Shown piece by piece: positions 42,877 through 43,375 of a stretch of DNA of 64,000 nucleotides. Numbering within the stretch: position 1 is the first letter of the stretch; each line of letters begins with the position of its first letter. The translations under genes and the position numbers were made by a program. This DNA is from Octopus sinensis. Its lineage: Eukaryota. A model generated the notes under the pieces. That model saw only the letters and a list, made by a program, of their open reading frames with translations, was not told where the DNA came from and made no database searches. The stretch covers positions 62,001-126,000 of the forward strand of contig NW_021833417.1 in NCBI RefSeq assembly GCF_006345805.1. Direction: 5' to 3'.

Positions 42877-43375
42877 ATGGAGAGACCCATATTGCCAGTC
42901 ATAATTGCAATCGCCCTGATCAGTTGGCTCATTCTTGTTCTTATTATTATTTTTGTGATAAAATATTTCCAGGTCAGCTTAGTTTTTGTAATGCTAGAGA
43001 AAACGAGGGTACAATTGCTCATGTAATGATGGAATGTGCTGCAATGTTGAAGAATGCTGTTTTCAAGTATCAAAGAATTGTGACTGTGACTGTGGAGTAT
43101 TCAATTGTTGTCTCCCGCAATTAGTTTAGTCAGACTAAAGATATTTTAGAACCAAAGAAGAATATTTGACTGCATTGCATGCCATTGCTGTTTCGGAGAC
43201 GCCTGTATTGTATGTGTTTTAGATATAAACAAACTAGTTTGGAAATACCGCTATTCGAATTACATTTTCCCCCAAACCTCCAAACGTTTCTGGCTTTTGC
43301 TGTTGTTATTGGAGTGGACTAGACGAATTAGTCGATAAAGGAAAAAATATTGAATTAGAGGGAAATCGACAATAA
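42877..43375 (+). CDS. Hypothetical 139-aa single-pass membrane protein with a Cys-rich tail; 4 exons; absent from the ORF track
   Basis: GT-AG introns 42973-42997 (25 nt), 43124-43149 (26 nt) and 43210-43237 (28 nt) give an open frame with a TM helix, KYFQRKR, and 19 Cys in CxC/CC/CxCxC/CCC motifs. Confidence 0.7.

Follow-up and report, generated by a model that had tools for sequence, protein, structure and literature searches.

Does the interval from position 42877 to 43375 (+ strand) of a 64,000-nucleotide stretch of contig NW_021833417.1, here called the window, contain a gene, and what kind of protein would such a gene encode? An initial annotation had read it as a gene with three micro-introns for a membrane-anchored, metallothionein-like, Cys-rich protein. 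Coordinates and translation were reproduced exactly, i.e., an ATG at 42877, a stop codon at 43373-43375, and a product of 139 amino acids (aa) with 19 Cys, one transmembrane (TM) segment and basic residues after it. The arithmetic is exact, and the gene model stands. All three introns are of the GT..AG type and lie in phase 0, every exon consists of whole codons, and a double stop, TAA TAA, ends the open reading frame (ORF) at 43373-43378. The locus is quite probably a real protein-coding gene, to judge from its composition and its splice sites.

The composition of the frame was compared with chance. TGY codons number 19 in the model frame and 2 and 5 off frame (binomial p = 4e-5). From local base composition 5.0 Cys are expected, and the probability of at least 19 is 7e-7, which stays below 1e-3 when about 900 windows of equal size are allowed for. 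Even unspliced, the locus has the highest Cys density across the six frames of the window. Chance spliced ORFs, defined as those of at least 139 aa using three or fewer GT..AG introns of 21-29 nt, contained 2.9% Cys on average and 6.1% at most (n = 49), versus 13.7% in this gene. The N-terminal Kyte-Doolittle maximum over 19 residues is 3.38; none of 2179 chance ORFs was as high, and 0.05% reach 3.0. In exon 2, 11 Cys are read in the model frame versus 1 and 1 in the other frames, and the Cys-rich frame moves across intron 2 by exactly the shift that splicing predicts. Stop codons are absent from the 139 codons of the model frame, whereas each of the other frames holds 8. The spliced coding sequence has codon log-odds of +6.5, whereas the two other frames score -33.9 and -44.7 and the antisense strand gives negative values; exon 1 alone scores 7.6 in the model frame versus -31.2 and 3.0.

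The splice sites were judged by the rules of neighbouring genes. The intron set comprised introns validated by continuous Pfam matches in the FPPS and casein kinase I (CK1) genes, plus 41 probable introns from penalised spliced-ORF models. In FPPS, a farnesyl-diphosphate synthase (40137-38855, - strand), the polyprenyl_synt match runs over positions 6-250 of 251, unbroken across introns of 29, 27 and 27 nt. In CK1 (41794 to approximately 40630, - strand), the Pkinase match is unbroken across introns of 25, 27, 21 and 23 nt. The validated introns span 21-29 nt, and those of the Cys-rich gene (25, 26 and 28 nt) fall inside this range near the 25-nt mode. The 41 probable introns, which come from ten neighbouring non-transposon gene models, have this modal length and a loose consensus, GT[T/C/A]...[T/C]AG. 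A splice-site position weight matrix (PWM) was built from them, and 2960 GT..AG segments served as decoys. Intron 1 was placed at the 99.6th percentile of decoys and the 97.6th percentile of real introns, and its length is the local mode. Intron 2 was placed at the 98.4th decoy percentile. The gene therefore has micro-introns of the dicyemid kind, i.e., GT..AG introns of approximately 21-30 nt with the local consensus. The ORF and its splice arithmetic by themselves are within chance, whereas the Cys content, the hydrophobicity and introns 1 and 2 are beyond it.

Splicing is also needed for the frame to stay open. Retention of intron 1 gives a frameshift and a premature stop, and read-through of intron 2 gives a stop after one codon. 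None of the intron lengths is divisible by 3, and retention truncates the protein or alters its C-terminus. The frame of exon 2 is limited by the acceptor TAG at one end and by a stop one codon past the donor at the other. Upstream of the ATG at 42877, an in-frame TGA lies 15 nt away with no AG between the two, and the 39 nt upstream of the gene contain no GT. Because acceptor and donor are both missing beside this stop, no micro-intron can join an upstream exon. The features of the locus are collected in Table 1.

Table 1. Features of the Cys-rich gene and of overlapping sequence, in window positions.
Feature	Position	Strand	Description
Exon 1	42877-42972	+	32 codons; start ATG, 4-residue N-terminus, hydrophobic segment at about residues 5-31, K29
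Intron 1	42973-42997	+	25 nt, GTCAGC...GCTAG, phase 0
Exon 2	42998-43123	+	42 codons; basic stop-transfer cluster RKRG; 11 Cys as CSC, CC, CC, CDCDC, CC
Intron 2	43124-43149	+	26 nt, GTTTAG...TTTTAG, phase 0
Exon 3	43150-43209	+	20 codons, NQRRIFDCIACHCCFGDACI; 5 Cys, 1 His
Intron 3	43210-43237	+	28 nt, GTATGT...ACTAG, phase 0; weakest element of the model
Exon 4	43238-43375	+	45 codons and stop, FGNTAIRITFSPKPPNVSGFCCCYWSGLDELVDKGKNIELEGNRQ; CCC triplet, acidic polar C-terminus; tentative
Cys-rich core, residues 39-93	42991-43207	+	genomic span takes in intron 2
AATAAA hexamer, possible poly(A) signal	43374-43379	+	overlaps the double stop; second hexamer about 33 nt downstream
Overlapping out-of-frame ORF	42861-43124	+	87 aa unspliced, about 46 codons on the spliced mRNA

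Some signals were tried as evidence and set aside. The poly(A) hexamer is weak evidence: although AATAAA coincides in part with the stop, a hexamer is missing near the end of most neighbouring gene models. A[AT]TAAA was found within 40 nt of the stop in 2 of 9 of these models and nowhere within 120 nt in 5 of 9, at a density of 0.0037 per nt. The Kozak context is uninformative, the validated starts having no consistent base at -3. An unsupervised ORF-rescue intron screen, requiring at least 40 open codons on each side, returned flat lengths of 16-60 nt and was uninformative. A 147-aa variant of the gene was rejected as spurious, because the maximum-length spliced ORF search that produced it over-extends models. 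The same search gave a wrong 3' end for CK1, and the model at 40542-40863 (- strand) has a wrong last intron. The conserved C-terminal piece of CK1 (...DWAFDW) sits in the ORF at 40630-40863, and one more intron near 40837-40870 is still to be placed. In favour of a protein-coding gene, the Rfam scan of 41800-44500 detected no RNA family, and no repeat copy of the locus was found elsewhere in the window.

The protein has a single hydrophobic segment, residues 5-31, which is free of Cys; past residue 20, the 19-residue Kyte-Doolittle value is never as high as 1.4. From the single sequence, AlphaFold2 predicted a helix at residues 5-35 with predicted local confidence (pLDDT) of 81-97. A basic cluster, K29, R33, K34 and R35, stands at its end. 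The net charge is +1 in the N-terminal flank and +3 in the 15 residues after the helix (K29, R33, K34, R35 and D43). By the positive-inside and charge-difference rule, the more positive flank stays cytosolic. Since the C-terminal flank carries +3 versus +1, an exoplasmic N-terminus and a cytosolic C-terminus are predicted, i.e., a type III topology with a cytosolic Cys tail. The segment is probably not a cleaved signal peptide, because its hydrophobic core of 24-27 residues is too long. We infer that the product is a type III single-pass protein with its tail in the cytosol. The initial annotation had derived the same topology from the TM segment and the basic residues that follow it, and the hydrophobic peak of 3.38 together with the four basic residues bears it out. 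A signal-anchor of this orientation is predicted, and the predicted cytosolic Cys lie close to the end of the TM segment. This layout is that of S-acylated type III single-pass membrane proteins, which form a functional class and are not united by homology.

The first Cys stand at residues 39, 41, 46 and 47, i.e., 8-10 residues past the hydrophobic segment. The core, residues 39-93, has 16 Cys in 55 residues (29%) and 7 acidic versus 3 basic residues. In order, its Cys groups are CSC, CC, CC, CDCDC, CC, CxxCxCC and C, and they follow one another at intervals of about 6 residues, separated by polar or acidic spacers. The motif totals are 6 CC, 4 CxC and 1 CxxC. Cys resume at residues 115-117, and the whole tail has 10 aromatic residues. 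The spacing of Cys 39, 46, 53 and 60 had suggested Cys along one face of an amphipathic helix. This was rejected, as the Cys-only helical moment at 100 degrees gave a permutation p of 0.5-0.8.

Relatives of the protein were searched at several levels. Hmmscan of the full protein against Pfam-A gave only sub-threshold matches driven by the TM segment, i.e., Cadherin_C_2 and TMEM154. Cadherin_C_2 (PF16492) reached 18.3 bits against a gathering cut-off of 31.5 (E = 0.0037) over residues 9-52, which hold the TM segment and the first Cys. A protocadherin cytoplasmic region was rejected on this score, below the Pfam cut-off, and because no upstream exon is possible for cadherin repeats. No match at E <= 1 came from a word-indexed search of 5.8 billion proteins, and the PDB sequences gave none at E <= 10. 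An exhaustive phmmer search of 1.84 billion representative proteins found no true match. Its sole hit, P0001 (E = 7e-9), is a 1194-aa translated tandem repeat aligned over 17 weak stretches and was considered spurious. The earlier remark that no known family has this layout is therefore upheld for Pfam, the PDB sequences and the 1.84 billion representatives.

The source of the DNA bears on how this result is read. The best database matches of the FPPS reach 40-46% identity, and those with names are headed by molluscs and other spiralians. Introns shorter than 30 nt have been reported in no animals other than myxobolid cnidarians and Dicyema japonicum (PMC13644364); dicyemid micro-introns are covered in PMC6736024 and PMC13644364. 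The D. japonicum genome has 36.7% GC and 49% repeats, with many long interspersed nuclear elements (LINEs), and with approximately 5,000 genes it is among the most reduced in animals (PMC6736024). In the window, GC content is 35.4%, and several LINE and Tc1 elements are present. From the spiralian affinity of the FPPS, the micro-introns and this GC and repeat profile, the source is most likely a spiralian with micro-introns, a dicyemid. Since the source lineage is missing from the databases, where even the FPPS is at best about 46% identical, the gene can be called an orphan only in a limited sense: the searches reached as far as other phyla and found no relative there, and they say nothing on close relatives. 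It is most likely a single-copy, lineage-restricted gene. The initial annotation had also spoken of a renal parasite of metal-accumulating hosts. A parasite lineage is plausible from the FPPS and the intron size, whereas the link to metal in the hosts is speculation. A literature search on Cys-rich proteins or metal biology of dicyemids returned nothing relevant.

What, then, would the tail do? It is tentatively proposed, as a possibility that falls short of a firm expectation, that the locus is a single-copy, lineage-restricted gene of a micro-intron spiralian, encoding about 139-141 aa, whose tail would work by a metal-thiolate mechanism. Residues 5-31 would form one hydrophobic helix, i.e., an uncleaved reverse signal-anchor. 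The 4-residue N-terminus would be translocated, and K29, R33, K34 and R35 would hold the remaining approximately 105 residues in the cytosol. There the tail may form a membrane-tethered metal-thiolate cluster domain for Zn(II), Cu(I) or Cd(II), like a metallothionein but with a fixed membrane anchor. S-acylation would also be probable at the cysteines nearest to the membrane, C39-C53. Because the reducing cytosol excludes a disulfide knot, a tail in this position would have to act through free thiols, i.e., as metal ligands, acyl acceptors or both. The lean towards metal-thiolate clusters follows from the core of 29% Cys, the CC, CxC, CxCxC and CxxC motifs, the acidic spacers, the recurrence at about 6 residues and the missing helical Cys face. 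This preference over acylation is weak, and sequence alone cannot choose between a metal buffer or sensor and a palmitoylated scaffold, the two readings between which the initial annotation had wavered. It is unlikely that in dicyemids a metallothionein-like domain, arisen de novo or changed beyond recognition, came to be permanently tethered to the cytosolic face of a membrane by an N-terminal signal-anchor.

Several observations weigh against the metal-thiolate explanation, and the first of them concern the tail. Searched alone against Pfam at E <= 10, it gave no match, including none to metallothionein, Sprouty, granulin, Shisa, PLAC8 or CYSTM. AlphaFold2 gave it pLDDT below 50 and no confident fold. 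With its 4 Phe, its several Ile, Leu and Val and its net negative charge, the core is atypical of classical metallothioneins. Juxtamembrane Cys clusters of known single-pass proteins usually serve S-acylation and not metal binding. The term metallothionein-like thus holds for the Cys density and for the CC, CxC and CxxC motifs, whereas membership of the family does not hold, no metallothionein Pfam model being matched at E <= 10.

A less probable alternative keeps the same gene and topology and takes the tail mainly as a multiply S-acylated cysteine string that binds metal only incidentally. Its Cys pairs would be lipidated by DHHC palmitoyltransferases, and the tail, lying on the inner leaflet, would organise a membrane microdomain or scaffold. 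The layout agrees with this: the first Cys follow the hydrophobic segment after 8-10 residues, directly behind the basic cluster, as in synaptotagmin-1, LAT and the coronavirus spike endodomain, and F, I, L and V are interspersed among the Cys. The weak Cadherin_C_2 similarity (E = 0.0037, under the cut-off) reflects the same arrangement of TM segment and juxtamembrane region. However, the array is 55 residues long and appears again at 115-117, far past the usual juxtamembrane window. Its spacers are polar or acidic, with 7 D/E versus 3 K/R in the core, no helical Cys face was found (p 0.5-0.8), and 29% Cys is well under the content of known cysteine strings.

The protein was also compared with known systems. 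Metallothioneins share with the protein approximately 30% Cys in the 55-residue core, the CC, CxC, CxCxC and CxxC motifs, a cytosolic location, predicted here, and the lack of a confident metal-free fold. The protein differs from them in its N-terminal TM anchor, in a core with 4 Phe, aliphatic residues and His that is net acidic rather than Lys-rich, and in matching no metallothionein Pfam family at E <= 10. To our knowledge, no metallothionein has an N-terminal TM anchor. Proteins with S-acylated juxtamembrane clusters, i.e., synaptotagmin-1, LAT, the coronavirus spike endodomain and cysteine-string protein, resemble it in the short exoplasmic N-terminus, TM segment, basic cluster, cytosolic Cys and CC doublets. 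Their 2-14 Cys, however, lie within approximately 25 residues of the membrane in a basic or hydrophobic context, whereas the array here extends over at least 55 residues with acidic spacers and is followed by no further domain; no sequence similarity was seen. The SPR domain of Sprouty/SPRED is likewise long, cytosolic and rich in Cys that are interspersed with hydrophobic and acidic residues, and it associates with membranes through palmitoylation. It differs in having no TM segment, a length of about 110 residues and a conserved Cys pattern, and the Pfam Sprouty model gave no match here.

Two families of small membrane proteins come close in concept. CYSTM proteins were proposed as a membrane-associated analogue of the metallothionein system; they are tail-anchored, with a TM segment at the extreme C-terminus that holds 5-6 Cys and is followed by an acidic residue, and with a Pro/Gln-rich N-terminus (PMC2804304). 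Like them, the protein described here would be a small (<150 aa) eukaryotic protein with a single TM segment and consecutive cysteines. Unlike in CYSTM, the TM segment is N-terminal and Cys-free, the Cys lie in a long soluble tail with a polar C-terminus, and the Pfam model is not matched. PLAC8/PCR proteins, small Cys-rich membrane proteins tied to metal tolerance, are defined by CCXXXXCPC or CLXXXXCPC in a two-helix PLAC8 domain (PMC12467093). This motif is absent from the protein, and Pfam PLAC8 gave no match. In density and motifs the predicted protein resembles metallothionein, in membrane context synaptotagmin, LAT and cysteine-string protein, and in concept CYSTM, but it lacks the features that define each of the testable families.

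Other observations concern the gene itself. When the window was shuffled 10 times with dinucleotides preserved, each 64-kb strand gave on average about 4.9 loci of at least 139 aa, so that approximately 10 spliced ORFs of such length are expected per window by chance. Among decoys intron 3 ranks only at the 32nd percentile and among real introns at the 12th, both of its ends being poor. Codon log-odds in exons 2 and 3 favour the +1 frame (exon 2, 13.0 versus -0.2). An upstream ATG with G at -3 opens the 87-aa ORF that overlaps the start, and no paralog of the gene was found within the window.

These points bear on the next alternative, namely that there is no functional coding gene and the reading is chance or decayed sequence, such as a relic pseudogene or intergenic DNA between CK1 and a LINE. 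About 5 spliced ORFs of at least 139 aa per 64-kb strand in the shuffles, no homolog in the protein searches, the weak intron 3, the codon statistics of exons 2-3 and the out-of-frame upstream ATG all agree with it. Nevertheless, it is considered rather unlikely. The Cys are frame-specific (p 4e-5, and 7e-7 versus composition), the hydrophobic segment is extreme (0/2179), and two top-percentile introns bring these two parts into one frame. In chance ORFs the Cys content went no higher than 6.1%, and the model frame is free of stops over 139 codons where the others have 8 each. The preference of exons 2 and 3 for the +1 frame is expected: the training genes contain few Cys codons, and in +1 TGY turns into Val or Ala codons and never into a stop. 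Codon usage cannot decide the frame in these exons.

Intron 3 leaves the end of the protein less certain. An in-frame donor alternative at 43216 would give a 22-nt intron 3 and add VC, i.e., a protein of 141 aa. With intron 3 retained, the product has 136 aa and an unrelated Leu-rich end, ...FWLLLLLLEWTRRISR. In exon 4, codon log-odds are 1.7 in the model frame versus -12.8 and -13.6, and the retained-intron reading scores -7.0. Exon 4 was kept and marked tentative, because its own frame outscores the retained-intron reading although intron 3 is weak. Of the gene structure first proposed, introns 1 and 2 are strong, and intron 3, hence the last 45 residues, is less secure than had been implied.

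It is very unlikely that the hydrophobic segment is instead a signal peptide or a type II anchor, with the Cys-rich part extracellular and disulfide-bonded in the manner of secreted or surface Cys-knot proteins. Small Cys-rich parasite proteins are often secreted, and CC doublets are found in disulfide-rich folds such as granulins. Yet the hydrophobic core of approximately 24-27 residues is too long for a cleavable signal, and together with the charge balance (+1 N-terminal, +3 C-terminal) this long stretch favours the exoplasmic N-terminus and cytosolic C-terminus. The number of Cys is odd (19), and no Pfam disulfide family, including Granulin, EGF and Shisa, was matched.

Hardly to be expected at all is that the true product is the unspliced 87-aa ORF at 42861-43124 and the Cys-rich frame a by-product: this ORF holds the first ATG, with G at -3, and its codon log-odds of 0.13 per codon are within the range of validated genes, but it reads through the top-percentile intron 1, has no TM segment, motif or Pfam match (E <= 10), owes its openness to the Cys frame (TGY becomes GYN in +1, never a stop) and its score to Val and Ala codons, and leaves the threefold periodicity of TGY and the Cys clusters of exons 3-4 unexplained. 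If transcription begins upstream of 42861, the ATG at that position, 16 nt ahead of the main start, would be in competition with it.

The surroundings of the gene in the window were also inspected. Between CK1 and the Cys-rich gene, at 41800-42545 (+ strand), broken ORF fragments (...NEDNTINPHIQSTQMRNTLETMGVEYKNWAIDKDLTIGGRLFKKDLK, followed by two stops) matched no Pfam family, the best E being 0.12; a decayed element is one possible origin, and a small gene that escaped recognition is another. Directly downstream of the Cys-rich gene are long reverse-transcriptase ORFs of the non-LTR (long terminal repeat)/LINE type. Transposable elements, classed by reading their translations, lie at 44455-47841 (- strand), 50055-54784, 4230-5724 (- strand) and 18673-19653 (+ strand). 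Among them are an ORF of gag-like type that has CCHC knuckles and a 326-aa Tc1/mariner-type transposase ORF that looks intact.

A segmental duplication of 5.35 kb with 99.07% identity was found at 25017-30345 and 58673-64000, the second copy reaching the window end. A gene for a leucine-rich repeat protein lies in it (26401-27608 and 60064-61263), and a cadherin-like gene begins in it. The cadherin-like gene at 29900-31670 (+ strand) is nearly intron-free (Pfam Cadherin, E = 1.7e-7) and has one TM segment and a short Cys-containing tail; its sequence is unrelated to the Cys-rich gene. Two homeobox genes with micro-introns were identified by eye from their translations, i.e., a Hox-like gene at 12291-11575 (- strand) and a CUT/Onecut-type gene at 56804-55695 (- strand). 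Two mucin-like genes with Thr/Ser/Pro-rich tandem peptide repeats were located at 1007-1973 (+ strand) and 9014-9924 (+ strand). The former, which has a TM segment and then a short basic tail at its end, gave no Pfam match.

For micro-intron genomes in general, a spliced ORF of about 139 aa is no evidence alone, and frame-specific composition and splice-site quality must carry the call. If expressed, the gene described here would be a concrete example of a gene restricted to its taxon, in a genome that ranks among the most reduced of animals. Its product would bring a new architecture to the small set of Cys-rich membrane proteins, in which a reverse signal-anchor precedes an extended cytosolic array with the Cys density of a metallothionein. 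Such a protein would serve as a simple test system in which a membrane-adjacent thiol array may handle metals, anchor lipids or do both. On the unlikely reading of a metallothionein-like domain evolved in dicyemids, the protein would be a membrane-bound metal-thiolate buffer or sensor for Zn, Cu or Cd, working at the surface of a parasite that lives in the renal fluid of cephalopods.

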